Shown here: positions 38,456 to 61,923 of the stretch, in pieces | Position numbering within the stretch: position 1 is the first letter of the stretch | Layout of the letters: every line of letters begins with the position of its first letter | Source: Basidiobolus meristosporus CBS 931.73 | Lineage: Eukaryota; Fungi; Basidiobolomycota | Direction of reading: 5' to 3' | NCBI GenBank assembly: GCA_002104905.1 | Contig: MCFE01000045.1 | Location: 134,921-198,920 of the forward strand | Length of the DNA: 64,000 nucleotides | Program-made: the position numbers and the translations under genes | The notes under the pieces: generated by a model | Seen by the model: only the letters and a program-made list of their open reading frames with translations | Told to the model about the DNA's origin: nothing | Databases searched by the model: none

Positions 38456-41249
38456 ATGTCTGAGCAACCCATGCAGATCACGGAGGATCCTTCTCCCTCT
38501 ATACCTTCAAATAATATCCCTCCCACCGAGCTTCACTTGAATTTCTCCTCACAGGAAACGCAAACTATCGCTAGTGCGGAAAACTTGTTTACAAATATGT
38601 CCCAAGACGCCATAAACCAGGCTTTTCTCAATCAACAGCTGGCCTCTCAACAGGAGCTCAACAACCTCCTTGCTGGCTCGTCCATGCTATCTGAAGGCAT
38701 GATGCTGATTGATACACCCACCCTACCCTCACAAGAGATGCTGAGTCCTTCTAAAGTAAACCTTCACAATGCTAACCTAGAGAGCCTTGTTGTTTCGGGA
38801 GAGTCGACGCCCAGCGGTGGGCTGACCCCACAGGAGCAAGTGATGTCCTCCATGATGCAAATCCCCTCACACGGGGGTTTCCACACGGAGGTCCCCAATC
38901 TTGTGATGGCGAATAGCATGATATCTCCTACCGTACAGGAGCAGCAGTTCTTCGAAAACATGCTTACCGAGGCTAGCACGGGAACAATCGTATCGAACCC
39001 TCAAAATATGTTAGTAGGCGAGGGTATGCCTCTTGAACCACCCAGAAGCGTCCCCTCCATGGGCCCGATACACCCGACCTCGGGCACACAAATGTCAACC
39101 ATGTTCCCGGATAATGGTAACATGATGAGCTTCGATATGGGTCTTTCACAAGCGCCACCCAAGCAACACGCCTTACGTGCAAACCGGCCGGCCCACCTTC
39201 GTCATGGCTATAGCAAATCGGTTTCCATGTTCACCCCTCCAAACCAACCGAGACCCTCGACCAGCACTCAGTATGTTGCGAGTAATCTTCAACCGATGCC
39301 CAACTCGCAGATTGCACCCACCATGCCCTCCGAGCGGATTCCACCTTTGTTCCAGAAACAAATGGTTGAAAACAGCCAGATGCTTCATGCGATGCGTAAA
39401 AAAATGGGTCACCGGAGGCAGTATTCTGCACCGGAGCTGAAGTATTCGGGATTTCCTAGAAGCCCCGAGAAACAGCTGCTCCGGCAAACCACGGAGGGGC
39501 AAATGCTGAGACAGCGTGGGCTTATGCAAATGACGCCCATGAAACAAATGGCGCCCCATGAGTTACACGGGCTCAGCCCGGAGCAGATTGAGGCTTTGTC
39601 TTTACACTCTCATGGCGAGCCAGACCCGAAACCACTTAAAATACTAGAATACACGGCGGATGGCTACGGCATACTCCGACCTAATAGCACAAACATGGCG
39701 AATCCCATGCAGGATGTGAAATGTGAGGAGCCTGAACCTCTTCATAAGCAGAGTTCTGTGGATGACATTTCTGCTAGCGACAAGGTGAGTTCACTGGACA
39801 ACTTAACCCGGGAGGAGCTGATCAAGAGGCTCCGGAATGTGGAGAGCGAGCTGGCCAAAACCAAGAATTCGCCCACGAAATCCCCGAATTTGAAGGTGGA
39901 GACATCGGTCAGTCCTTTCGGAGAGACTGGATCTGAGCAGGGTGACGAAAGTAAGTCTAGGATCACAGATTGGTTCGCTTTGTGGTCCATTACTAACGAG
40001 GCCCATGTAGCTGGAACCGGGGATTCCGTCAGTCCAGTTGGCGCCCACTCCCAAACGCACCTACAAGCGACACCAGAGGATAAACTGGTCGATGATGACG
40101 ATGATGATGACGACGAGCCAGAAGACGATGAGGACTCGAAAGACGAGGAGAAGTCCGAAAAATCCCAGTCGTTCGATTGTCTCTGGGGTGACTGCTCAAG
40201 ATCATTCCCGGCACTTGATGTTTTGATCTCGCATATTGGCCAGGAGCATATCGGAAGCGGGAAGGTAAGCAGGAGTCGCAACTGACAGGCATCTATGGGT
40301 TGCAGTCTAAATTTGTCGCATCATTTCCTTAGGCTTCTTACAAATGTGAATGGCAAGGTTGCCCGCGGAATCAAAAGCCGTTCACCAAACGCCACAAGAT
40401 GTACAATCACTTGCGAACCCACACTGGGGAGAGACCGTTCCAATGCCCTGTTGCAGGTACTTTCATATTCGGACCATTGTTTCTCTTTGAGTGGCTATTG
40501 ATGAATCCTCCGTAGATTGTGGCAAACGATTCTCCAGACCCGACTCTCTGGCAACTCATGTTAAAACCCACTCCAACGTCAGACCATACATATGCCCCGT
40601 CCCAGGCTGTGGAAAAGCATACTACCATTCGCGCTCTCTACGCAAGCATATCAAAAGCCACGAGATGACACGCCCTCTCCAGATATTCTCCCAGAACATC
40701 CCTGGGGTGAGCCCACAAAATATGATCGACCTAAACAACCATCAGCTACTTGGGGCCAGCCAGCTAGGGATGACTCAAGGGATCAAGTATCACCATTACC
40801 AGCCGGACTCCTCGACATTCTCCACTCCAAAGCCTGGGGAAGAGATCCCCGCAATCAACAACGCACAGCCATCTGCTGCACCTAGTGGAGGACATGGGCC
40901 AGCCATGGCCAGCTCCAACCTGAACACAAATGTGCCCAACGACTTCCCCATATCACCAGTGGATGTTTCCAACCTTCAGGGGACAGCGGCGATGATCGAG
41001 CCGCCTGTCCTTCAGTCTCATCAATTTGCCGATGACGACGCAAGAAGACTAGAGCCGGCCATCATGGCTACTCCTGGCTCCCTTACGTCGGAAATGTTAG
41101 ACCAGCTGATTCAACAAGTAACTCCCCCGATACCTTCATCACACCCCACTACCCCGTCTGGTGAAGGGCTTGGAGCATCTCCTTTCATTCCTTCGACAGG
41201 ATTCTCCGCCCAAGCCATTCCTACCATACCGACCACACAAACTCAGTAA
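38456..41249 (+). CDS. C2H2 zinc-finger transcription factor, four fingers, GLI/ZIC/Zap1-like tryptophan-linked pair
   Basis: CLWGDC...HIGQEHIGSGK(intron)ASYKCEWQGC...HLRTHTGERPFQC(intron)CGKRFSRPDSLATHVKTH...CPVPGCGKAY; long Q/M/P-rich N-terminus. Confidence 0.88.
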
Positions 41250-44881: not shown

Positions 44882-47514
44882 TTAACTGATAGAGGGCTTC
44901 ATCAGCTCTCGCTTGCAGTGCTTGTAGAGCTCGGAGAAGCGAATATGTAATAAAATGGTACCAGCAAACAGGTACCACTTCCAGTCGATATTATATTGCT
45001 TGAAACCAACGGTATTAACTATACATTGGGTGAACATAAGATTCCTGCCAACTAAACCAAACATGAATGGGCTTACTTGGGAAAATCTACAGAAGAACAA
45101 GAACCATGGACCAAACAAGAGTTTTGGATCTGAAGGTTCTTTTGAGCCTGGTGGTAGACCATTCTGTGTTGCGCAGACTTCTATTATTGATGCCTTGCGC
45201 GTAAAACAGAAGAATCAGCGTTACCAGCACGGTGCTACGTGCACGATAAAGTCCTTTACAACCGTCGCTATACTCATTATTGCAATTCAGTGCTTGCACA
45301 CCGTCAGCCAACACTATAATGAACGAAGCAACGAAGATTGCTCCTAATTCCAACCCATAGACAAACGTATCTAATAGTGATTCAAAAGAAAATATGCTTT
45401 TCTTTGGCGATCTCGGGGGCTCGATCATTATAGTCTCGCTGGCCTCTTGAACCCCCCGCTCTGCCGCCGGAGGAGTGTCGACAAAAAACGTGAAAAGAAT
45501 CTGTATAGGACTCGGTGGGAATACTACCATGCATGAAGGCAGAATTTCTATTGCAGAATCAGTTCCAAATTGTAAATTAGTGCGTACAGTGCACTACTAA
45601 TCTTGAGTATCCTGTAATGCGTCGCTTCTCTAATGCGCTGATAGTGATCGCTAAGTTATCGTGTGTTAAATGATATCGCGATCCATTCTTTACATGCATG
45701 CCAACATCGGTCATGGTTGAAACATGCAAGTTCTTTTCATCTTTGACGCAAGATGTGAACTTTTCCAGGATGTCGCTAGAATTTTTGATATCTTGGCAAA
45801 GAGGTAAAATTGCCTCTGTTGCGCCTTTGGTGAACACAACCACGTTTTTGAATAATTGAGACGACATACTACCGACATCCTCTTGATTGTCGAGCCGAAT
45901 AGCTGCTCAAGTAGCTGTTGGGAATTTCCCTCCAAGTCGAGTCCGAATTTAAGAGCAAACATCTTCAGTGCAACCTCAGTGGAGCTTCCGCTAGCAGCTC
46001 ATTCACCAGATTGATCTTCACGAACAGTTGCCATATTGCAAAGAGCTGAGCGTTGAATAAATTTCTTAAGGTTGAACCCTAGTTGTTGATAGGAATCTGA
46101 TTTGCTCACAATAACATGGCTAATTTCTGGCGACGAGCCCAAGCGATAGACCTCCCCTTCTGGCTTCGAGGTTACTGAGTAGTAGCCTCATATGAATTTG
46201 ACCAAAACATTCGGGCTTCGGTTAGAGTGTCAGTCTTCTTAAGTGAGGATAGTGGTTTAATTGCAAGGGTTACACAAAGAAAATATACGTTATCTGAACA
46301 GATGTTGGTTACTCCACCTAGGGTCTCCAGTGAGTTTAGTTTTCGTACAATAGCTTTCTTCTCAATCATCTCCTTGCCACCAAGGACAAAAATTACAGTT
46401 AACATAGTGGTTATTCTAGCCGGTACAGCACATAAACCAGCAGTCATTGCGTACATCCGGACATCGTAGCTGATTGCCATTGAACATTAGTGCAACCCTA
46501 TTGACCCGTTAGAGAAATAAGTAACTTACGTAATATTGAATTTGTTAATTCCCATCACAATAATTGCAGCAATCACCGCGCTGAGTAGCAAAAACAAGGC
46601 CATAAGGTCCAAACTACAAAATCAACTTATTTAGCAATGGTTACTATTGAGGGATCCAGTATGCCCTACCTCTTCTGTAAGCGAGTTTGACCATGGTGCT
46701 AGCCTGTGTGATTGTTTTAGCAATCTTACCAACCTCAGTATTCATCCCAGTGGCTATTACTATGCCATTGGTCCGGCCTTTGCAGATGATGGTCGAGGAA
46801 TATGCTATATTGCAACTATCTCCTATTGGTAATATAGTTTCTTTACACGGAACACCTAGCCTTCGGGAGACTTGGTTAGCCCGCTCATCAAATCTCCCTC
46901 TTAATATAAGTCTTAACCAACCTTCTGCCAACGTTCTCGGATTCACCAGAAAGAAGTGCTTCATCCACCTCAAAGTTGGACCCATCAAATAATAGAATAT
47001 TAGCGGCAATTGCATCACCCTCTTGAATCAATAGAATGCCCCCTGGGACCAATTCCCGACCTATTATTATCAGTTCTTTGCCGTCTCGGATGACACTAGT
47101 TGTGGGTGAGGCCATACTATGGAGCACCTTCATTGTTTGCTCTACTTGATACATTTGATGAACTTCTAGAAACGAATTCAGAAGAGTAATCGCAAGGACT
47201 AGGGAGCCTAATATGCAATCTTTCTGTACAAAAGACAAAATCTACAAATGCAGTTAGAAGACATCACAGTCTGATTTGATATCAATTTTTTACACTGTTA
47301 CAGCGAGAAAGATATAGTTGATGGCATGTTTGAGTTGGTGTGATAGAAGGATATGCCACTTAGTATCACTAGCTCCGTCCAACTCATTGAGGCCGTATTG
47401 TTGCCATTTCTTGTGCATCTCTGAGCTACTTAACCCTGTCTCGATATCTGTATAGAGCATTTGAATCACCGTGTTGATATTTAGTGAATGACATATTTCT
47501 GTTTTCGATGTCAT
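44882..47514 (-). pseudogene. Decayed P-type IID (ENA-like Na+/K+) ATPase
   Basis: YGLNEL, ELVPGGILL, FEVDEALLSGES, IVRKLNSLETLGGVTNICSD, TIKRMSV, TKGATE. Has in-frame stops and frameshifts, DKTGT altered to (D)..KTDT, and no GDGVND hinge seen. Confidence 0.85.
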
Positions 47515-48407: not shown

Positions 48408-48489
48408 GGTGAGATGGCCGAGTGGTCTAAGGCGCTGCGTTCAGGTCGCAGTCTCTTCGGAGGCGTGGGTTCGAACCCCACTCTCATCA
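48408..48489 (+). tRNA. tRNA-Leu (anticodon CAG), intronless
   Basis: Acceptor stem GGTGAGA/TCTCATC, D-arm TGGCCGAGTGGTCTAAGG, anticodon arm GCTGCG-TTCAGGT-CGCAGT, long variable arm, T-loop GGTTCGAACCC, T-rich run downstream. Confidence 0.96.
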
Positions 48490-49785: not shown

Positions 49786-50691
49786 TTATAATCGTTTGGC
49801 AATAACGATGGAATTCACCACTTCATTATATGGATGAACGACAAGGACAGGCTCGAAACCTGTCAACATCTCTGTTTCAATTTCCGGGTACAATAGGGTC
49901 CTGAGGCTGTGAGCACTTCGAAGAACCAAGTAAGAGCCGGGTCTCATGGCTCTCCATAGCTGTTTGGTGATTTCTTGTTTTTCGGCTTGAGCAAGTCCTA
50001 CCAGTGCAGCCAGATATACAATATCATGACACTTCAGGTCTTGTATCTTACCAACATCCTGATGATGAAAGATCAGGTTGCTTTGGACATCTGGCAATTG
50101 TTCTACAAGCGCCGCACTTACGGTCAGCGCCTCCAAATCAATATCATAGTTATCAATGACGAAGGAAGTCACCTCCGAGCTTCCAATCTGGGTCAATAGT
50201 TCTCTTGCCAAACAAATCGAAGTTAACGGAAGTGGTCCCGAGCCCAAAAACGCAATCTTTTCGGGAGATTGATGTAAAACGGAACGGATGGCATTGAGTT
50301 CCATCTTCGCCAGGGAAACATAATTTTGATAATACGGAAAACGCAGTAGCTCCAACGCGGCTTCTTCGGGCTTCTTGACAATGTGGGCAGCCCATGTTGC
50401 CTCCAACCGGAACTCACCGATGGCACAGAGCTGTCGAAAGTGCTCAGTAATCGCTATGATCTGCCTATCACGGAGAATGGCCTCCAGATCATAGCGCGGT
50501 AGTGTTTTTATGCAAATACTAACCAGCTCACTGAAGGCGGCGTTAATTTCGGGGCAAGGATCCAAAGCGGATGCTTTGGCCAATGTTTGATATATGCTGT
50601 AAATCCGATTCCTGGTTTCCTTTGCTCTTACGAATCCGTTTTGTGCACAAAAATCTGAGGGCTCAGTAGGAACAATGGAGTGGCTTAGCAT
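49786..50691 (-). CDS. NAS: Nicotianamine synthase, 301 aa, intronless, core domain only
   Basis: LDPCPEINAAFSELVSIC, FPYYQNYVSLAKME, IAFLGSGPLPLTSICL, NYDID, DIVYLAALVG, LVLRSAHSLRTLLYP, VVHPYNEVVNSIVIA: the NAS family motif series in order. Confidence 0.95.
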   Translation of the reverse strand: MLSHSIVPTEPSDFCAQNGFVRAKETRNRIYSIYQTLAKASALDPCPEINAAFSELVSICIKTLPRYDLEAILRDRQIIAITEHFRQLCAIGEFRLEATWAAHIVKKPEEAALELLRFPYYQNYVSLAKMELNAIRSVLHQSPEKIAFLGSGPLPLTSICLARELLTQIGSSEVTSFVIDNYDIDLEALTVSAALVEQLPDVQSNLIFHHQDVGKIQDLKCHDIVYLAALVGLAQAEKQEITKQLWRAMRPGSYLVLRSAHSLRTLLYPEIETEMLTGFEPVLVVHPYNEVVNSIVIAKRL

Positions 50692-50918
50692 GTCGAGAGA
50701 AGATTGGATAGTATGTAATCTGTGGGCATATCGAGTAGAAGATAGCCTTTATATACTGCAAAAAATGTTATGGCAAAGCTCTGCTGCATCTTTGACAATC
50801 AAATGGGGTTATTCAACGTAGAAACCCCATTACTTCTCTTGCTGCACCATCTACCTCCCACCAATATGACTAATTCTTGTTATCCGAGTCTTGGCCAATA
50901 ATTTTGAACATGGTTTGA

Positions 50919-51168
50919 GTACCCTATAGGGCATCAAACTAGACTAGTTTTGCACAACAAACACGATGATGACCGATAAGGTGCTCAGATAACAGTCGCA
51001 CTCTAACCTCTAGGGTACGCATCGAATCAAATGCTCCACAAAGTACCACAATGGTGGGATCGCCCGTATATTATCTAACTATGGCCAACGTTACCTGAGT
51101 CATAATGTCATTATCCAAGAGATTGATGGCTGATAAGCTTAATCTTTCTAACCTCCAGGGTACGCATC
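50919..51168. promoter_or_regulatory. Repeated candidate metal-response elements in the NAS/MFS divergent promoter
   Basis: CTAACCTCTAGGGTACGCATC (51003-51023) and CTAACCTCCAGGGTACGCATC (51148-51168), each with a GATAA motif just upstream. A related near-palindrome GTACCCTATAGGGC lies at 50919-50932. Confidence 0.6.
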
Positions 51169-51309
51169 AACTTTAACTCAACCAAAGCCCCAGGAAATAT
51201 TGCAACACAACAACCCCAGAATGTTGATGCTTCCGCAGTCCCTCATTTTGTTCACAAGTATTTAAGCCGTATTATTGAAGGATTTCCCAGGGCTTAAACC
51301 ACCGTCAAT

Positions 51310-53014
51310 ATGTCACCCGAGAGAGATGATAGCATGAAGATAACGCCGCTCCCTACAAGACAACTGATTGTATTGTGCTTGGTAAGGCTTGCCGAACCAA
51401 TCAACTATACTATTCTTTTTCCATTCATGTATAGGGTAAGTTGCATACTTGTGCCCATTCGGACTACTTTTCTAACCCTCGTAATGGATCAGATGGTTAA
51501 GTGGATGAAGGTAGGCGAAAGCGAGGAGGATGTAAGCTCATATGCGGGCCTGATAGCGGCGTCGTTTGCGATTGCCCAGTTTTTCAGTGGTACATGGGTG
51601 GTCTCTGACTCAGATATGTGCGGGCGGTGCTAACCTTGTGCTAAATATATTCAGGTATTCCTTGGGGCTGGTTGTCGGATCGCATCGGAAGAAAGCCCGT
51701 GATTCTGATGGGCCTACTAGGAAGTACAGTTGGAATCATAATGTTTGGTTTAAGTCAGAGTTTTGCCATGGCTATAATCAGTCGCTCTTTGGCCGGGATA
51801 CTCAACGGGAATATTGGTGTCATCAAATCATTGCTAGCCGAGATTACTGATAAATCTAATAGAGCGAAAGCTTTTTCATTGCTCCCACTAGTCTGGGGAG
51901 TGGGAAGTGTAGTTGGTCCCCTGCTAGGTGGTCTATTGTCAGAGCCAGCTACTCAATATCCGTCGGTATTCGGTAACAATTCTGTGATGATCAAGTTTCC
52001 TTATCTTTTGCCTTGCTTGATTGGTTCCTGCATTAGCCTGGCAGGGTCCATCTTCGGTTTCTTTTTCCTAGAAGAAACATTGAAAAGTAAAGTACAAGAG
52101 AAGAACCAAAAGAATGCGCAAGCAGGACCACATGCTTCCCAGGAAAAATCCTCACAGACAACTGGCGAATGTGAAAAAGGCTCAGAAATCATTGAGGTGG
52201 CAAATGCGAAATTGGATACTCACACCCCTGAATCTAAGCCATCGCTCAGATCCTCGCTTACCAAGCCTGTACATATAGTGGTGCTCTCGTATGTACTATT
52301 TTCCCTTCAAAATGTTACATGGGACGAGCTATACAACCTTTGGACTGCTGCTCCCATTGAACACTATGGGCTTGGATTAAGCCAGTCGAAGATCAGTATC
52401 ACATTAGCTATAGTGGGCATTTTAACGCCAGTGGTACAGCTTATGATTTACCCACCGCTTCAGCGACGTTTTGGGGATCTATCCTGTTACCGAGTTGTGC
52501 TATTTGTGTACATCCCATTTTATATATTGCAACCTTTTGTAGCGGATCTGGCTCGGCATGGTGAGCAGTTTAGAGACCATAACACAAGTACTTACAGACT
52601 TGTCCAAGTGGGTGTCTGGGCAGGGGTTGGGCTCTGCCTTATTACCAAAGTAATTTGCTCACCCATCTGCTTTACTGCTACATCGATATTGCTTACAGAT
52701 GTCTGTGAGAATAACGAGGTTTTAGGAACAGTGAATGGGTAAATAGTCCTACTAATCATTTACACCTGAATTTACACCTGAATATATATATCCTGACAAC
52801 TTATTGTAGATACTCGCAAGCCGTGGTTTCGCTTACGAGAGCGGCTGGGCCAGCCATGGGTGGCGCTTTACTTACCCTGTCAATCAAGTCTTCTCTACCC
52901 TTTCCATTAAATAGTCATTTAGTTTGGAATGTATTATCAGTCATTGCTATTATTACTTGGATTGAATCATTCTGGGTAAAGTCAGTTTTGAGTAAGAAGG
53001 ATAATTCACATTGA
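51310..53014 (+). CDS. MFS transporter of the ZIF1/ZIFL/TOM (yeast YCR023C-like) family, four exons
   Basis: QLIVLCLVRLAEPINYTILFPFMY / EEDVSSYAGLIAASFAIAQFFS / GIPWGWLSDRIGRKPVIL, RSLAGILNGNIGVIKS, GPLLGGLLSEPATQYP, FFLEETL, SLTRAAGPAMGG. Confidence 0.88.
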
Positions 53015-53315
53015 AATAAAACCCACGTATTAAGAGACATAATTTGCACTGAAATATGTTACACGGAGCATAAAATGAGAATGTATCAAGACATATTAGC
53101 CTATCGCTAATCTAGTTATAACAAGTACATGAGTACCCGACCAGTGATTTGATGGATGCACAAATCACACATTGCACCAATGGGTTATAATAAACAAATG
53201 ACTATTAGTCATATTCCAATCTTGTCATCGATGGAGATTTAGATGTTATGCACCATGCTCTTATAAATATGGGGAACTCCTGGGATGGGAGGGCATAAAC
53301 CTTATTTCTTCAAGA

Positions 53316-55414
53316 ATGGTCGGTAAAAGCGACGAGCAATATGCTTCCAGCGGGAAAGGCTACGTTCTACACAACATTCCAGCTGAGGGATTGAATACAC
53401 CATTATCCGAAATAGTGGAAGAGCGTCAATTTACTGTTCGAGCGATTGTGGTAGGAACTATCCTAGGTGGGTTTGTCTCTGCTAGCAACCTCTATATTGG
53501 CCTTAAAGTTGGCTGGGTTTTCGGTGCGTCCATGTTCGGGGCTTTATTCGGATTCGCAATCCTGAAGCCTTTCTCTCGTATGACTGGCAGTTATTTTGGC
53601 CCGAAGGAAAACTGCGTCGTTCAAACTGCTGCAACAACTACGGGAGGTCTATATGTTGGCTTTTTCACCGCTATTCCGGCCCTCTACCATCTAGGCCTAA
53701 TGTCCCCCAATTTCATGGATGATATACCGGCTTTATTGCTCTGGACAACCGGCAAGTATTTCGAATCCTGTGGTTACGTGTATTGTTTCTAAGATTGTTT
53801 CCCCATAGCCGCAGCATTCTTTGGCCTCTTCTTTGCTGTACCACTCCGAAAGTACTTTGTCATAAAGCAGAAGCTCCCTTTTCCCTCTCCAACAGCAACG
53901 GCCGAAACAATTAGGCAATTGCATGCGACTATGACGGGTGAGCGTGAGGCCATGCAAAAAGCAAAAGTGATGCTCGGATGCTTCATGGCTTCCTCCATTA
54001 TACCAATTATTGGTGTATTCTTTCCGCTTCTAGAGTACGTACACTTGCTATACTGGATTGGCGTAGCTACTGGAAGTCAAGGACTCATATCTGCAGATCG
54101 CGTATGGAAGTGGGTGATTAATCTTGATCCAGCATTCTTAGGTAAGTGGTTTTCAAAAAGTGGTTTTCATTGTTTTGATCGGAAGAGTAAGCAGCTAAGT
54201 TTTCCAAAGGTGCTGGCACACTGATTCCCAGCAATACTGTAGTGTCGCTATTCTTAGGGCAATTGGTGTCATATGGAATAGCTGGTCCACTGATGTTGGC
54301 ATCAGGGAATTTCGTCAAAGCAACCGGATTTGTTTCCGAAGGACCAACTGCTCAATCCTGGTTCCTCTGGCCTGGAATAGTTCTGATGCTGGCTTCTTCC
54401 TTTACAGAACTCTTTTGTAATGGAGGGAGTATACTGAGAGCAGTCCACGGGGCCTTTTCAGGGTTATATGGTACTATCAAGCATATGCTAATTCGCCGGA
54501 ATCCTGTTCACGAAGAGTCATTGAAAGATGAGGAGGACGACGATCCGGCCCCCAGGAACGAGAGAATCCCAACATGGATGTGGGCTGTGGGACTGACAAT
54601 TGCTGTCGTATTCAACTGCTTAGTACTAGGCTTCTATTTCAATATGCCAGCGTACCAGTCCATCTTGGCCATCTTTGTTGCTTTTGTGCTATCATTTGTA
54701 GGACTTCAATCAGTGGGTGAAACGGACATTAACCCAGCTGGCTCCATTGGAAAAACCTCCCAGCTAATATTTAGCCAATTTTCTGCGCCTTCACTTGCTG
54801 ATGTTCAGCGACTCAATCTTATGGCGGGTAATGTTGCTGGTTCTGCATCCTACCAAGCGGTCGACATGGTTAAGGACCTACTCACCGGCCACATCCTCGG
54901 CGGAAGTCCGTTGGCTCAATTCTACACCCAGCTGATTGGTTCATTTTTTGCCATTTTCATTGCAGTAGGAATATTTATTCTTTACGCTTCTGCTTATCCC
55001 TGTGTCACTGATGCAAACAGCATGCCTTGCGACTTCCAATTGATTGGAGTGGTTGCATGGAAAAACGTGGCTGTCACTATGACTACAGGTTTGGATATAC
55101 CGTACGATAGCAAGATGTTTTCAGTAGCATGTGGGGTGTTCGCTGTTGTGTACACTGTGCTGAAAAAATTGGTGATTCCCGTGAAATACCATCCATACCT
55201 TCTGAATGTCAACGCCTTTGGTATTGGTTTTGTTAACGCTGACCCTGGATCTGCTTTCGGGATGCTATGCGGAAATCTCTTCTTTCTCGCATGGAGGTTG
55301 GTACGACCTAAACGCGCTGAATTTTATCATTACTCTGTTGGGGGAGGGCTACTAGCTGGCGCGGGTATTGCTGGCTTAGTAAAAGCTATGCTACAACATA
55401 TTTGGCGCAAATAA
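53316..55414 (+). CDS. OPT-superfamily transporter, YSL (yellow stripe-like) branch, three exons
   Basis: QFTVRAIVVG...SNLYIGLKVGW...FGPKENCVVQTAAT, FFAVPLRKYFVIKQKLPFPSPTATA, GETDINPAGSIGKTSQLIF, DLLTGHILGGSPLAQF. Introns 53752-53808 (GC-AG) and 54142-54209. Confidence 0.92.
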
Positions 55415-55825
55415 GAACTACCTTAAATGGGGGACTCCTTGATACCTTCTACAGTAAGTCAATAAATAGCGTTAGTCAACAATACCCAAACTGTGTTATC
55501 CAATAATGCCTACAGTCTGTTCATTTTGGCCAGAGTGGTGAATCTTTTAATACTGGTATTACTTTTACTCAGTTGATTTCTGACGTAGGCATCATTATCT
55601 ATTCTTTTATTGACGCTTCCTTGCAATTTACAAATGAATCTTTGGCTTCTTTGGGTTCAACGCTTTATCCTGTATGGAAGCATATGCATTGATGCAGATA
55701 GGTTTCTGGGAATGATAATTGCCATCAGGTGTAATCTTTACTCATTTCATGCAAAAAAAGTGACCAGATACTAAATGCTAAGGGTTATGGGAGGAAAGTC
55801 ATCAGCTTAGGGGGGTGACAGTCAC

Positions 55826-57837
55826 TTAGGGTTAGGGGGGGAGACATTCACCAACAGGTGAAATCTTTATTTCAGTTGAAACAAAGAAGCCAGCGCTACT
55901 GTTGTAGCTTTGATACAAGAGTGTGTAGCTGAGGGGAATTTGTAGGTAAGTTTACAAGAAGTGATGATAGTTCTTCAGTGCTCAAGACACTGTTCAGTGG
56001 GAAGGGGGGTAGCAAGAGAGGTAAGAATGACTTGTGAACAACATTAATGAGGGGAATGTGATAAGGATTGATATTCATCATAAAGGGAGTGTGCTGCTGC
56101 AGATATTGCTGCCAAAGGTCTGTCAATTACTTCAGGTAGGCCAGCTTGGGTTTTTCTGACTGCAGAATATAGTGAGCAAACTTTTTGACTTCAGGATCTC
56201 CAAGTATAGTTCTCCAGCAGGAGCCAGGTGTAGTGTGGTGTGTTCTCTTCCAGGCCTTAGTCAGTGGGTTGTTGCAGTGGTGAAGTCTGAGATATAATCT
56301 GGTTCTAAGGTAGAGAAGTCTGATCTTATAGGGCATAAACCCAAAAGCACCAAGAATAGCATGTCTGTAGGGGCATTCAGGCAAATGAGGCACCAAGGAG
56401 GTAATGCACCATACTGCAAACTTGTCAAGCTTAGTGCAGTCTCTGGAAGTAAGAGAGAGAAGTGGTAAGCCAAATTCTAGGACAGGTAAGACAAACTGCT
56501 TGAGTAGAAGGAGGCAGCTGGGAGCTGAAGTTGTAGGAGGAGTAACAGCCAGTAGCTTGTGGAGTGCCTGTCTTGCCAGGATAATTCTCTTCTTCAGGTG
56601 TGCTCCAGAGTCTAGTCCAGTAGGAAGGAATGGAGAGCCAAGATATGTGGCAAAAGCCTGAGCAGGTATAGTGGAGTTCTCCAAGTTGATGGTAGAGCCC
56701 AAAAGTACTGTCTTTGCAATGGACAGCTGAAGATTATTCTTCTGCAGATACTGGTGGATGGTCTGGGAGTCTTGTTGCACATTGGAGGAGGATATTCTGA
56801 TGTCATCAGCAAAGAGAGTAACCAGGCAGTCAGCTGAGAGTCTTGGGAAATCATTCAGGAAGATGGCAAACAGTATAGGACCAAGCACAGAGCCTTGAAC
56901 CACTCCATTAGGAACTGAGAATACAGCTGATTGCTCACTTGGGTGAAGAATTCTTGCTTGTGGATCTAGAAACAGAGACCTGACAAGGAGGGTGAGAGAG
57001 GTACTGGAGAAGCATTGTAACTTGGACCAAAGCAGATTTCTGTCAACTGAATCAAAGGCCTTAGTGATATCAAACAGAACAGAGGGATACTTGAACTGGA
57101 GATAGTGATCTTGGCTAAGTATGACTGCATATTCCAAGGAGAGGCCAGGAACAAAGCCAAACTGTGCAGGGTGAAACTTGAGGGAGTCAGAGTAGAGCTC
57201 CTGAGCAAGCAGAAGCTCAAACACCTTTCTGCAGGTGGGCAGCAGAGATATTGGCCTGTAGGAGCTAGGATCCAGGTGCCTTCCTTTACCCTTGTACAGT
57301 GGCAGAACATTGGCAAAGGACCATTCCTCAGGAGTAGAAAGCTGGGCTGAGCATTGCTGAAACAGTGGAAGCAGAAGTGCAGACATGGCCTTGGAAATAG
57401 TCTTCAGAAGCTCATAGGAGATTGTGTCCACACCTGGGGCAGTAGAGTTGGGAAGCCTCTTGTGCACATTATGGATTCTCCCTTGATCAAGTGCAAGTGG
57501 GATGGGCAGAGTCTTAAAGTCAGGATGAAAGCCAGGTGTTGAATACTGCTTTGTAGAGAAGAAGATGTTAGCCAGCTGTTCTGTTGAAGGTAACCTCCTG
57601 GAAGAGGGCCTCATTGCCCTGTAGAGTCTTGACACTGCTCTTGTTACAGAGTTGGAAGATTGCAGAGGCAAAGAACTCATAATATGATCCCAGAGCTGAG
57701 CACGCTGAGTGTGGTGAATTGCCTTGGAGTGGTGTATGGCTGTCAGGAGGAGTTTATCTGTTTTTGGGTTAGGGAAACACAGGTAGCTTTGTTGCAGGGC
57801 TGAAAGAATGGATTCCTGTTGTGCATCAACATTTAAA
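55826..57837 (-). mobile_element. 5'-truncated, partly degenerate non-LTR retrotransposon (LINE) with RT ORF
   Basis: APGVDTISYELLK, YRPISLL, QFGFVPG, FDITKAFDSV, GVVQGSVLGPILF, LFADD, YLG. No endonuclease seen upstream; premature stop at 56127. The 3' end has AATAAA, a stem-loop and a CCCTAA-like tail. Confidence 0.9.
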
Positions 57838-58552
57838 ACTTAGCAAATTTTACTCCGTTTGAAATTCTAGTACCCTAACTGATTTTCCCTAACCCAAACA
57901 TAACAAATCCCAGTTACAGTTTATTTTATCCCACCGCAGAATCTATTTTTAGTCAACACACCTGATCTATTTTCAAATGGTCATTACGTTATCAACCTAT
58001 CAGCCAAGCCTTCCCAGGTGATTAGTCATCTGAGATCTATCCAACCACTGTGCAGTTGCCAAGACATCAGTTGATTGATGATGTAATTTTCATTTATCTT
58101 ATGCACCTATGAACACCCAAATTGATTTCAATCAATCCAGTCCCTTGGCACTTACTAATCAACTTGATCAGAAAAGTATAAATAAAGTTTACTGAGCCTT
58201 TTGGTTTAGTGTGTGTCTCAACAAAATTAAGATTCTGTCTCAGCAAAAATAAGAATCCAACAATTCCGTTCTAGTTTCTATCCAAGCCTAGTATATCTAG
58301 CACTCCAAAGAACACCAAGCCTAGCCTGCCTAGCAAACAGATATCATTGTCTTTATAGCCAACCCAGCTACATCCAAGACCAATATTGGATCAGAATCTT
58401 TCTGCTAATATTTTTGCCACTCTCTGACAATTCTAAGATTCTGCACTTAATTGTCCCTTTGGTTCAGTTAAACCATTCAAGAGTTTTATTACACTTTCTC
58501 TTGGATACAACATTTTTTTTGTTGAATTCCATTACATTCAGCCAATTAGAAG

Positions 58553-59530
58553 ATGTCCTCAGCAGCAAGCAATCCAAACCTTTCCATGTTGGAAGAAGCC
58601 AGAAGAAATCAGGAAGAACTTACTGAACAGCTTGAAAACATCATGCTTGAAAGAAACACCATGATGCTTGAGCACTCAAAGCTTGCCAAAACAAGATCTG
58701 ATAATCACCATAGAGATGAACTCCTTGAAGTTATATCTGGTTGCCAAGATGAAATTGGAATAATTAAGGAAGCACTGGAGAATATTGCCATAGTAATTGA
58801 CAGCATTGAAAATCTGCCAAGCCTTGCTCTGCATCAGCCACCAAGAAGTCATGCCTTTGAATCCTCCAGATCTACATCTCCTTCTAGACCTGCCCTGGTG
58901 GTTGTCCCAAGATCCTTGCTTGTATATGCTGAAGGTACCAATGCCATCAAGAATCCAACTGAGTTTCTTTACAAGTTTAGTCATGTCTTAGCTGCACACC
59001 AGCTAGACCCTGACACCAACTGGGCTAGACTTCTGCCTCTCTGTCTCACAATGCAAGATGCTGACTGGGTTGAAGTGAATATTCCTTCCAGTAGTACGTG
59101 GAAAATTGCCCAAAACCTCTTTTGCAGCCATTTTGAAGATCCTCTCAAGAAAGCACATCTGAACTGCAACTTATGGAAAACTAAAATGCAAAAAGGTGAA
59201 TCTGTGCAACACTTCTGTGATAGATTCCAAAGACAAATGAGATTAGCTGGAGTTAGTGATGCTAATCCATTGCTTACTGCTCACTTTCTTTCAAACTTTT
59301 TGCACCAGCTACAGAGCAATATTGCTATTGTCAAAGCATGCAACCCTGCCCGTACCTATGACCAGATCTCAGAGATATGTACACTGGCAATCACCTTGAC
59401 TGCAGCTGTTAGCCAGACTTCAGGCAACTCAACCCAATATCCCACAACAGCCAGAAAAGAGACCAGTCATGTGACCAAGAATCAGTCAACCGCTACCAAG
59501 CACTGTGAGCTTCATGGAAAATGCTATCAT
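58553..59530 (+). mobile_element. Retrotransposon gag-like ORF, interrupted at its zinc knuckle
   Basis: NPTEFLYKF...WARLLPLCL...WKIAQNLFCSHF...QKGESVQHFCDRF is gag-like. It ends at CELHGKCYH, where LINE 3' sequence begins. Confidence 0.75.
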
Positions 59531-59652
59531 TTAGGGGGGAGACCGTCACCAACAGGTGAAATCCTTATTTTGGTTGAAACAAAGAAGCCAGTGCTACTGT
59601 TGTACCTTTGATACAAGAGTGTGTAGCTGAGGGGAATTTCTAGGTAAGTTAA
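59531..59652 (-). mobile_element. Short 3' fragment of the same LINE family
   Basis: Aligns by eye at about 90% identity to 55832-55955. Confidence 0.88.
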
Positions 59653-60176
59653 TAAGAGGGGAGGAAAGTCACCAAGTGGTGAAATCTTTATTTACTTATG
59701 ACAAGTATCTAAAGAAGCCAAGTTAATCTGAAGTAATTCCTAGAAAGCTAGGTCTGAGAGATATCTTCCTGGTAAGCCAGGTCTGAGAGTTGAGAAGCTG
59801 AGTGGTACTATATTTCCTAGTTAGCTAGGTCTGAGAGAGGTTTCCTGGAAAGCCAGGCCTGAGAAATGAGAATCTGAATATATCTGAGCTAAGTTATCAT
59901 GGTTTGCGGTAGCTGAATTGTGGCCGGAATGGCCAGTAGACTGGGGGAACTGAGATATATTTCTGGGCGATCACTGGCCAAATTTACTAGGCAAATCTGG
60001 CCAATTAGCATTTCAAGGATTTCAGCCAATCAGAGCCTTTACTTTGCCCAATGGTTGATCAAGCCATCTCCCAATAAGCACACATCAATTTATTGATCAA
60101 ATTTTGCTGGATCCAGGATTTGAACCCACAACCATGGGTATGGAAGGGTTAGGGATAACCACAAGGCTAAGTGTTC
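59653..60176 (-). mobile_element. Probable tRNA-derived SINE with LINE-like 3' end
   Basis: Minus-strand A-box TAGCCTTGTGGT (60169-60158) and B-box GGTTCAAATCC (60126-60116) at tRNA-like spacing, a body with repeated hairpins, and a 3' end AATAAAGATTTCACC-N4-GGTGA shared with the LINE. Confidence 0.6.
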
Positions 60177-60824
60177 TTGGTTAGGGTGTAGGTGTTATAG
60201 TAAGGGCTAGAAAAAGGTTAGAAGAGCAGGGGTTCTGGGGGACGCAGTCCCCTAGAGAATAAAAAAGCAGGGGGTTTGGGGGATGCAATCCCCCATACTG
60301 CTCTTATACTCTTTAAATTCCTGTTGGATTACTTTTCTCTCATTCTTGGTTCTGGTCCCTTAGGGTTAGAATTCCTCCTCCTAACCCTTATCACCCTAAC
60401 CATAAATATTTTTACCCTACAATTGGCACATTGTCTGCTCATATGGTGGGCATGTCTGGACCAATATTTGTCTCCCTATACTGTCCATACGCTCTGTATA
60501 AGTCTTGATGACTATTTAGTTAATAAATTGTTATTTTTAATATATATCTAATAATTAATGGGATTCATCCCAATCTGACCACAATCCCATATTTTGATAA
60601 GCTTTGGGCACCATAAATTGCGTGGCCCTAATATGATAAAAAAATTCATGGCCAATACAAATTTTCTGTAACCCAATTGCTTTTACCAAATATAAAGTGT
60701 ATCCAAAAGTTCAATATATATTATGGCTATAATAGAAACTTTATTTGACACCATCGCAACTACTACTTATGTTCTATGCGCACATGTATCCCGCGGGAAT
60801 TGTAAAACTTAGCCACATGGTACA

Positions 60825-61680
60825 AAAGTGCTTTTATTTTTCATCATGATAGTTTTACATGAGTTCCTAACGCACTTTGAAAGTACGCAGTAGCCATACC
60901 CCAACAGGTTTTAAGGATGTCCACTAGCTACGTCTACTTGTGTCTAGCGGGAGCCATCAATCATCAGCCGTGCAATACTGAAATGCTTTTATTTTTCATC
61001 ATGCTAGTTTTGTATGAATCCCTAACGCACTTTCATAGTGCGTGGTAACCATACCCCAACAGGTTTTAAGGATACCCACTTGCTATGTTTACTTGTGTCT
61101 AGCGGGAGTCATCAATCATCAGCCACGCGGTAATAAAGTGCTTTTATTTTTCATCATGATAGTTTTACATGAGTCCCTAACGCACTTTTATAGTGCACGG
61201 TAACCATACCCCAACAGGTTTTAAGGATACCCACTTGCTACGTTTACTTGTGTCTAGCGGGAGTTATCAATCATCAGCCGCGCGGTAATAAAGTGCTTTT
61301 ATTTTTCATCATGATAGTTTTACATGAGTCCTTAACGCACTTTCATAGTGCGCGGTAACCATACCCCAACAGGTTTTAAGGATACCCACTTGCTACGTTT
61401 ACTTGTGTCTAGCGGGAGTTATCAATCATCAGCCGCGCGGTAATAAAGTGCTTTTATTTTTCATCATGATAGTTTTACATGAGTCCTTAACGCACTTTCA
61501 TAGTGCGCGGTAACCATACCCCAACAGGTTTTAAGGATACCCACTTGCTACGTTTACTTGTGTCTAGCGGGAGTTATCAGTCATCAGCCGCGCGGTAATA
61601 AAGTGCTTTTATTTTTCATCATGATAGTTTTACATGAGTCCCTAATGCACTTTTATAGTGCGCGGTAACCATACCCCCAG
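60825..61680. repeat. Tandem array, 155-bp period, about 5.5 copies
   Basis: The anchor CTTTTATTTTTCATCATG recurs at 60831, 60986, 61141, 61296, 61451 and 61606. Confidence 0.95.
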
Positions 61681-61923
61681 AAAGTAGTGTGGATGCTTAC
61701 TTTAAACGCTCACTTGTGTATTGTACGGAATATCAACAAACAGCCGCGTGGGAATGGAACATCATAGAAAAGCATTGCTTTGTTGTTAGCAAGTATTGAT
61801 GCGCAAATAGTGGTACTATGTGAATTATTGAGTAACTATTTACTCTAGTTGGTTCCAAGATATTCCTAGACAATATGCTCAAAATCAATATTAGCATTAA
61901 TAGCTTACTCTTTGATCACTAAA

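Follow-up and report, generated by a model that had tools for sequence, protein, structure and literature searches.

Plant ZIF1, TOM1 and ENA1, members of the major facilitator superfamily (MFS), transport nicotianamine (NA) or phytosiderophores, and plants have been reported to have gained nicotianamine synthase (NAS) from fungi. Fungal NA biology rests essentially on one organism, Neurospora crassa. Here we describe three adjoining genes of Basidiobolus meristosporus CBS 931.73 that encode a NAS, an MFS transporter and an OPT family transporter, a block that is the first genomic hint of some fungi moving NA or metal-NA across membranes. The block lies in a 64,000-nucleotide stretch of contig MCFE01000045.1 (positions 134,921 to 198,920 of the forward strand), referred to below as the window and numbered from its first letter.

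The NAS of N. crassa is active, makes NA and is induced by zinc deprivation (Trampczynska 2006, as cited in bioRxiv 10.64898/2026.08.27.747422). Core-only NAS proteins, those of fungi and mosses, have been defined as class III, and high activity in vitro has been reported for fungal NAS (PMC10248798). The bacterial cnt operons are responsive to a shortage of metal (Zn) (PMC9175090). A Cu-responsive cluster of Pseudogymnoascus destructans, VC83_01834-01838, encodes a Fre reductase, an MFS protein, an opine dehydrogenase, a protein using S-adenosylmethionine (SAM) and a P450, and has been proposed to make an opine-type metallophore, its product and function being unproven (PMC12113139). Two recent papers on the evolution of NAS and YSL proteins do not discuss fungal gene neighborhoods (PMC12454661 and bioRxiv 10.64898/2026.08.27.747422), and full-text searching of the literature found no fungal NAS-MFS-OPT/YSL cluster, although the review of Laffont and Arnoux 2020 may mention one.

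Layout of the block and gene models

The block and its intergenic regions are arranged as follows.

49786-50691, minus strand: nicotianamine synthase (NAS) gene; Pfam PF03059, intronless, 301 amino acids, core-NAS domain alone
50692-51309: divergent promoter region common to NAS and the MFS gene; 618 bp, from the gene-model coordinates
51310-53014, plus strand: MFS gene of the ZIF1/ZIFL/YCR023C subfamily; Pfam MFS_1, 4 exons, 503 amino acids
53015-53315: spacer between the MFS and OPT genes, presumed OPT promoter; 301 bp, without an open reading frame (ORF) or other gene
53316-55442, plus strand: YS/YSL-type OPT gene; Pfam OPT, 3 exons, 666 amino acids after indel correction

The NAS and MFS genes stand head to head across a gap of 618 bp, and the OPT gene follows the MFS gene in tandem after 301 bp. 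An ORF scan and Pfam place all three at one locus, directly adjoining and intact, and the scan of the intergenic gaps revealed no further gene between them. The arrangement that had been proposed from the letters alone, NAS (minus), MFS (plus) and YSL/OPT (plus) with nothing in between, is confirmed by these searches and by the gene models.

The gene models were built by hand from splice sites and then compared with relatives. The MFS gene has exons at 51310-51435, 51493-51589, 51655-52738 and 52810-53014, and its spliced product is identical to the public protein P0225. The splice sites of the OPT gene were set by comparison with aligned orthologues, giving exons at 53316-53751, 53809-54141 and 54210-55442; intron 1 (53752-53808) is of the GC-AG kind with the donor GCAAGT, where the orthologues use GTAAG. 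The public OPT model P0122 (645 amino acids) mis-splices and loses two short stretches of exon 3, whereas the hand-built model aligns without gaps to the paralogue P0124 and equally well to the Basidiobolus ranarum orthologue, except where P0123 has a single gap of 16 residues. As written in the window, the OPT reading frame runs into a stop at 55414, 28 bp early. Position 55395 holds one extra A relative to Illumina DNA contigs of the source strain (depth, 210 to 250), and this base is an assembly indel that truncates the frame. No spliced joins were seen in the sequencing runs containing the block, which are of DNA. Removal of base 55395 yields an OPT of 666 amino acids ending at 55440-55442, with a C terminus that resembles those of the orthologues and is the same as in the near-identical copy P0121; the block end at 55442 given in the earlier note is matched by this frame.

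Family identities of the three proteins

The NAS protein matches PF03059 with an E value of 6e-70 and 236 bits (cutoff, 27.1) over profile positions 10 to 271 of 276. Residues 94 to 297 align with the archaeal MtNAS (3fpe), and the SAM-binding motif GxGPLPLT is preserved (FLGSGPLPLT versus FIGGGPLPLT in MtNAS). At 301 amino acids, the protein lacks the C-terminal autoinhibitory extension and thus has the class III (core-only) architecture. Its closest relatives are a B. ranarum protein (76% identity) and a paralogue from B. meristosporus (73%), followed by those of Spizellomycetales chytrids and Pezizomycetes at 45 to 48% and then by sequences from a moss, other Ascomycota, Mucorales and plants. 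In a NAS tree, the Basidiobolus clade has support of 100/100 and groups weakly with the Spizellomycetales (88/55).

The MFS protein matches Pfam MFS_1 with an E value of 1e-25, and its NCBIfam and PDB matches are efflux-type DHA1 relatives (Tet, NorA and MFSD10). An AlphaFold model of the protein is all helical, with a pLDDT of 81. Both transporters were placed by their Foldseek ranking against Swiss-Prot. For the MFS protein, ranks 1 to 8 are occupied by mfsB of Aspergillus fumigatus, ZIFL2 (29%) and ZIF1 (27%) of Arabidopsis, psiT2 of Psilocybe (twice), Arabidopsis ZIFL1, yeast YCR023C and azaK, with identities to the three plant proteins of 26 to 29%. The remaining MFS proteins, of which MdtG is the next at an E value of 1e-14, lie at least 4 orders of magnitude behind by E value, and because of this gap the label "ZIF1-type" holds at the level of the subfamily. 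The reviewed Swiss-Prot proteins matched by Foldseek did not include TOM1 or ENA1. A further B. meristosporus MFS protein of the same subclade, P0229, is 71% identical and is encoded on a 57-kb contig.

The N-terminal pieces of the OPT protein match TIGR00733 and not TIGR00727 in NCBIfam, and its sole sequence match in the PDB is barley HvYS1 (E value, 5e-14; 1e-19 for the paralogue P0124). The structure search used a model of P0124 (80.5% identical to the window protein; pLDDT, 81). With this model, Foldseek returned 27 YS1/YSL proteins from Swiss-Prot, including ZmYS1 and every Arabidopsis and rice YSL, together with yeast YGL114W, at E values of 1e-24 to 1e-20; the first PT-type OPT in the ranking has an E value of 8e-14 and 13% identity. 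YGL114W is the second-best structural match (23% identity). TM-scores among the YSL proteins range from 0.64 to 0.72, AtYSL6 being the highest of the plant matches at 0.72. Sequence relatives of the OPT are found in early-diverging fungi, including many Mucoromycota and Zoopagomycota (39 to 45% identity), with bacterial OPTs next; within the OPT family, bacterial members fall only in the siderophore subdivision (PMC3061005).

The proton-coupling residues D446, D490 and D494 of HvYS1 are conserved as D432, D478 and D482 in P0124, and G76, V78 and the GG hinge are conserved in the OPT as well. The substitutions Y547 to F and Y551 to W keep the aromatic caps in character alone. The fold and the coupling residues thus fit a YS-type transporter, the substrate of which is not readable from the sequence. 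Folate-transporting OPTs (PMC13642987) were considered for comparison and set aside, being Opt1/PT-type and of no bearing on the YSL-like clade.

These identities agree with those in the earlier note, which had read the trio as a NAS, a ZIF1-type MFS exporter and a YSL importer. The NAS label is upheld by the PF03059 match, the homologue search and the MtNAS alignment; ZIFL2, ZIF1, ZIFL1 and YCR023C are indeed among the nearest reviewed relatives of the MFS protein; and the Foldseek ranking, the TIGR00733 match and HvYS1 as sole PDB sequence match put the OPT on the YS1/YSL side of its family and not on the PT side.

Linkage of NAS to transporter genes

The order and orientation of the OPT, MFS and divergent NAS genes are identical at three loci: the one in the window, its paralogue L001 elsewhere in the B. 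meristosporus genome and the B. ranarum locus L002. A second B. ranarum locus, L003, has kept the divergent NAS-MFS pair without the OPT gene. Flanking genes differ wholly among the related Basidiobolus loci, and their intergenic DNA is nearly unalignable. Synonymous divergence (dS) between copies of the block is saturated, and nonsynonymous divergence (dN) is 0.09 to 0.18; NAS, compared with its paralogue and orthologue, has a dN of 0.15 to 0.18 with saturated dS, and the dN/dS ratio of the OPT relative to B. ranarum is 0.03. Saturated dS, low dN and changed flanks together indicate that the block has persisted through a long divergence with all of its genes under purifying selection.

NAS genes also adjoin transporter genes in other fungi. 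In the chytrid Gaertneriomyces, NAS is flanked by a divergent gene for a ThrE family membrane protein (PF06738) on one side and is followed by an OPT gene, related to that of the window, on the other. ThrE genes stand head to head with NAS in Gaertneriomyces, Spizellomyces and Fimicolochytrium, all Spizellomycetales, and in the Pezizomycete Maublancomyces.

L004:7481-9333, L005:6932-8506, L011:6930-7283 and L012:7288-9123: ThrE genes adjoining NAS; PF06738

The ThrE genes paired with NAS are orthologous, with 58 to 69% identity in conserved blocks. Their position, which is that of the MFS gene in Basidiobolus, suggests pairing of NAS with a transporter as the conserved theme and makes the ThrE family a candidate NA exporter; the literature searched gave no link of ThrE to nicotianamine and no ThrE-NAS pair. 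Helicostylum (Mucorales) has an OPT gene at a distance of 8 kb from NAS, two other genes lying in the interval. If a genome contains about 10 OPT genes in some 10^4, three independent occurrences at 10 kb or less from NAS would, by our rough estimate, be very improbable by chance. The adjacency of NAS, MFS and OPT looks like more than chance. The earlier note had named a lack of recurrent linkage in other fungi as a sign of chance adjacency; what was found was recurrence, as trios or a pair at the other Basidiobolus loci and as a NAS-OPT pair in a chytrid.

Two other neighbors of NAS were examined as possible members of these families and rejected. The 743-amino-acid neighbor in Maublancomyces, which has no Pfam match, is not an OPT, and the MFS gene near NAS in Fimicolochytrium, examined for membership of the same subfamily, gave no tblastn match at an E value of 1e-3. 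In the Sordariomycete Bombardia, a gene for a 704-amino-acid ATP-grasp protein (L010:6089-8282) is divergent from NAS; its product may modify NA or be unrelated to it.

The shared promoter

The region between the NAS and MFS genes contains a repeated element.

51002-51023 and 51147-51168: two copies of a 22-bp element; candidate cis-regulatory site
50916-50930: partial inverted copy of the 22-bp element, from a repeat search

The element occurs twice in the 64-kb window, both times in this promoter, against an expectation of 0. Among the 13 loci retrieved, its 9-mer core is found once, in the promoter of the B. ranarum orthologue and about as far from the start of the MFS gene, and is absent from the paralogous loci L001 and L003. 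Compared with the three related Basidiobolus loci, the NAS-MFS promoter is alignable in short blocks only. The Zap1 zinc-responsive element (ZRE; ACCTTNAAGGT), the ZafA core CAAGGT and the SreA site ATCWGATAA were found neither in the shared promoter nor in the related promoters, the only motifs present being generic GATA and CCAAT sequences. The 22-bp repeat matches no canonical Zap1 or ZafA site, and its identification as a ZRE is unsupported; as a repeat it is genuine, and it is conserved in part.

Possible function of the block and alternative explanations

In the reading that we favor, with confidence that is evenly balanced, the three genes form a coupled NA module, in its extracellular metallophore version, serving Basidiobolus in its gut and soil niche, where metals are competed for. 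NAS would condense three SAM molecules into NA, the MFS protein would move free NA out of the cytosol, by analogy with plant ZIF1, TOM1 and ENA1, and the OPT would return metal-NA (Zn, Fe, Cu or Ni) to the cytosol by proton symport. The families of the three proteins, the intactness of the genes, the conservation of the block and the recurrent pairing of NAS with transporters are observations; from them we infer the substrates, the directions of transport, the compartment, the metal and the co-regulation of the three genes.

A number of observations weigh against an extracellular module. No transporter gene lies beside NAS in the Cokeromyces, Powellomyces and Bombardia loci. Unrelated metabolite clusters of fungi also draw exporters from the MFS subfamily (psiT2 and azaK), and the nearest homologue of the MFS protein outside Basidiobolus, in Calcarisporiella (44% identity), has no NAS gene nearby. 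The OPT lies on opposite sides of NAS in Gaertneriomyces and Basidiobolus, so that shared ancestry and repeated assembly are indistinguishable. YSL-like OPTs are abundant in Mucoromycota, and Saccharomyces cerevisiae has one, YGL114W, and is not known to have a NAS gene, which would mean that the clade is not tied to NA. In the OPT itself, the HvYS1 substrate contacts Y451 and K482 are both replaced by G, and the contact F130 is replaced by Thr or Leu and S136 is also changed in a region where the local alignment is uncertain; half of the substrate-contact residues checked (F130, S136, Y451, K482, Y547 and Y551) differ. These residues were taken from a study of HvYS1, which notes that F130 or Y551 varies in NA-transporting YSL proteins too (PMC9691689). 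Finally, fungal NA has been treated as an intracellular chelator (bioRxiv 10.64898/2026.08.27.747422).

Intracellular storage, which we consider rather unlikely though worth serious attention, would have a vacuolar MFS protein load NA to trap Zn or other metals and the OPT release metal-NA, with NA staying in the cell. Arabidopsis ZIF1 resides at the vacuolar membrane and plant YSL4/YSL6-type proteins reside at internal membranes; storage accords with the presence of ZIF1 and ZIFL2 among the nearest reviewed MFS relatives and with the highest plant TM-score of the OPT being that to AtYSL6, and it draws on the same synteny evidence as export and recapture. The only characterized fungal case, N. 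crassa, is likewise described as intracellular chelation induced by Zn deprivation. However, the plasma-membrane exporters TOM1 and ENA1 belong to the same plant family as ZIF1, the spread of TM-scores among the YSL proteins is too small to carry weight, and the sequences do not discriminate tonoplast from plasma membrane. The replaced contact residues, key ones for binding deoxymugineic acid (DMA) or NA in HvYS1, and the presence of a YSL-like OPT in yeast, which is not known to have NAS, favor another explanation, in which NAS is coupled only to its head-to-head partner (the MFS protein here, ThrE elsewhere) and the OPT is a neighbor that carries something else (peptides, for example, or a different chelate) and has stayed in place by descent within Basidiobolus. 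The retention of NAS-MFS without the OPT at L003 points the same way, as does the fact that the partner recurring across phyla is the divergent transporter and not the OPT. We regard this as unlikely in view of the retention of the OPT in three diverged Basidiobolus loci in which all flanks have changed, the independent NAS-OPT adjacency in Gaertneriomyces, the OPT within 8 kb of NAS in Helicostylum and the very low chance expectation, by our rough estimate, of three such occurrences within 10 kb. It is more unlikely still that the genes have no functional link and are common transporter families brought together by chance and spread as duplicated segments, Basidiobolus having a highly duplicated genome. 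The abundance of MFS and OPT genes in these genomes, the retroelement next to the block, the confinement of full trios to one genus and the fungi without linkage named above (Cokeromyces, Powellomyces, Bombardia and, for the MFS gene, Calcarisporiella) would all agree with such an origin; yet the copies are old, with saturated dS and different flanks, and have nonetheless preserved order, orientation and intactness, and NAS-transporter pairing recurs across Chytridiomycota, Ascomycota and Zoopagomycota, which chance would hardly explain.

The extracellular module can be extended into a broader proposal, which is tentative and on balance doubtful: NA would be a trafficked, probably secreted metallophore of early-diverging fungi, descended from an ancient NAS-plus-transporter cluster in which the exporter was swapped nonorthologously (ThrE in chytrids and Pezizales, a ZIFL-type MFS in Basidiobolus) and in which the importer is an orphan YSL-like OPT clade that includes YGL114W. 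If so, the block would supply a first substrate for the YGL114W-type OPT clade and for the fungal ThrE family, and the plant-type exporter-NAS-YSL logic would have existed beforehand, with its genes linked, in the fungal lineage from which plants are reported to have gained NAS. Should some fungi indeed move NA or metal-NA across membranes, this would represent a third class of fungal metal scavenging beside hydroxamate or carboxylate siderophores and Pra1-type protein zincophores. The gut of vertebrates is a habitat of Basidiobolus, and B. ranarum is the cause of basidiobolomycosis in humans, so a Zn or Fe chelate system could affect growth under metal restriction by the host. The block bears on the roles of YSL-like OPTs, NAS-paired ThrE proteins and ZIFL-type MFS proteins in fungi and on how plants assembled a pathway from the same three families.

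Surroundings of the block

The features on either side of the block are the following.

38456-41249, plus strand: C2H2 zinc-finger gene; tandem CWCH2 motif, four fingers, three exons, 8.5 kb from NAS
45087-47514, minus strand: P2-type cation ATPase in short ORFs; Cation_ATPase_N, E1-E2_ATPase and Cation_ATPase_C
48408-48489, plus strand: tRNA-Leu(CAG), in an AT-rich gap of 2.2 kb that separates the ATPase from NAS
55836-59669: long terminal repeat (LTR)-type retroelement, about 400 bp past the OPT gene
56127-57680, minus strand: RVT_1 ORF in the retroelement (Pfam)
58553-59611, plus strand: gag-like ORF in the retroelement (Pfam)
60811-61730: tandem repeats of 155 bp, some six units that are 75 to 90% identical

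None of these features recurs at any of the related loci, which places them outside the module. The ATPase beside NAS was rejected as a heavy-metal P1B pump, since Cation_ATPase_N and Cation_ATPase_C mark it as P2-type; its ORFs belong to a gene that is either many-introned or decayed, and a kinesin gene lies beyond them on the NAS side. The zinc-finger gene, considered as a possible Zap1 orthologue, was likewise rejected as evidence: the Pfam Zap1_zf1 match scores 24.8 bits, just under the cutoff, and the gene may be Zap1/ZafA-like or belong to the Gli-like four-finger class of basal fungi. The retroelement has direct repeats of 136 nucleotides that are 90% identical (55836-55971 and 59534-59669), and the opposite strands of its RVT_1 and gag ORFs suggest a rearranged or nested element.

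Comparison with known systems

The NAS of N. crassa, like that of Basidiobolus, is a fungal core-only enzyme; it has been described, however, as making an intracellular chelator and without linked transporters, and the sampled Sordariomycete Bombardia likewise has no transporter neighbor. Yeast YGL114W, which is uncharacterized in the literature searched, differs from the Basidiobolus OPT in not being clustered with NAS.

The P. destructans cluster resembles the Basidiobolus block in having an MFS gene adjoining one for a SAM-utilizing enzyme and in the proposal of an NA-related metallophore, and it is metal regulated. It is an ascomycete, copper-regulated cluster without an OPT/YSL importer, and the likeness drawn here is by description. 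The claim in the earlier note that no fungal NAS-MFS-YSL cluster had been characterized stands insofar as none has been found described, but the P. destructans cluster is the nearest, partial fungal precedent (PMC12113139), and the novelty is accordingly narrower than "no fungal NAS-type cluster."

The bacterial staphylopine (cntKLMABCDFE) and pseudopaline (cntOLMI) operons share with the block a common logic, the gene for a NAS-type enzyme lying together with genes for export and import of the metal chelate. The bacterial importer is an ABC or TonB system, whereas the candidate importer in Basidiobolus is an OPT, and the Basidiobolus genes are eukaryotic, intron-containing and transcribed as separate units rather than as parts of an operon. 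Neither an opine dehydrogenase (CntM) nor a histidine racemase was found in or beside the Basidiobolus block, and there is no dehydrogenase ORF within 8 kb; the expected product is therefore NA itself and not an opine.

The plant NA and phytosiderophore pathway is built from the same three families as the Basidiobolus block, namely, NAS, the MFS proteins ZIF1/ZIFL/TOM1/ENA1 and the OPT proteins YS1/YSL. Identity between the plant transporters and the Basidiobolus MFS and OPT proteins is low, at 20 to 29%. Plant NAS has an autoinhibitory C terminus, which is lacking in fungal NAS (class III; PMC10248798). Relative to plant YS1/YSL proteins, the OPT keeps the proton-coupling aspartates but has replacements at the contacts F130, Y451 and K482, and its transport activity is a prediction. 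The plant genes, finally, are dispersed, whereas those of Basidiobolus form a single 5.7-kb block with a common divergent promoter.

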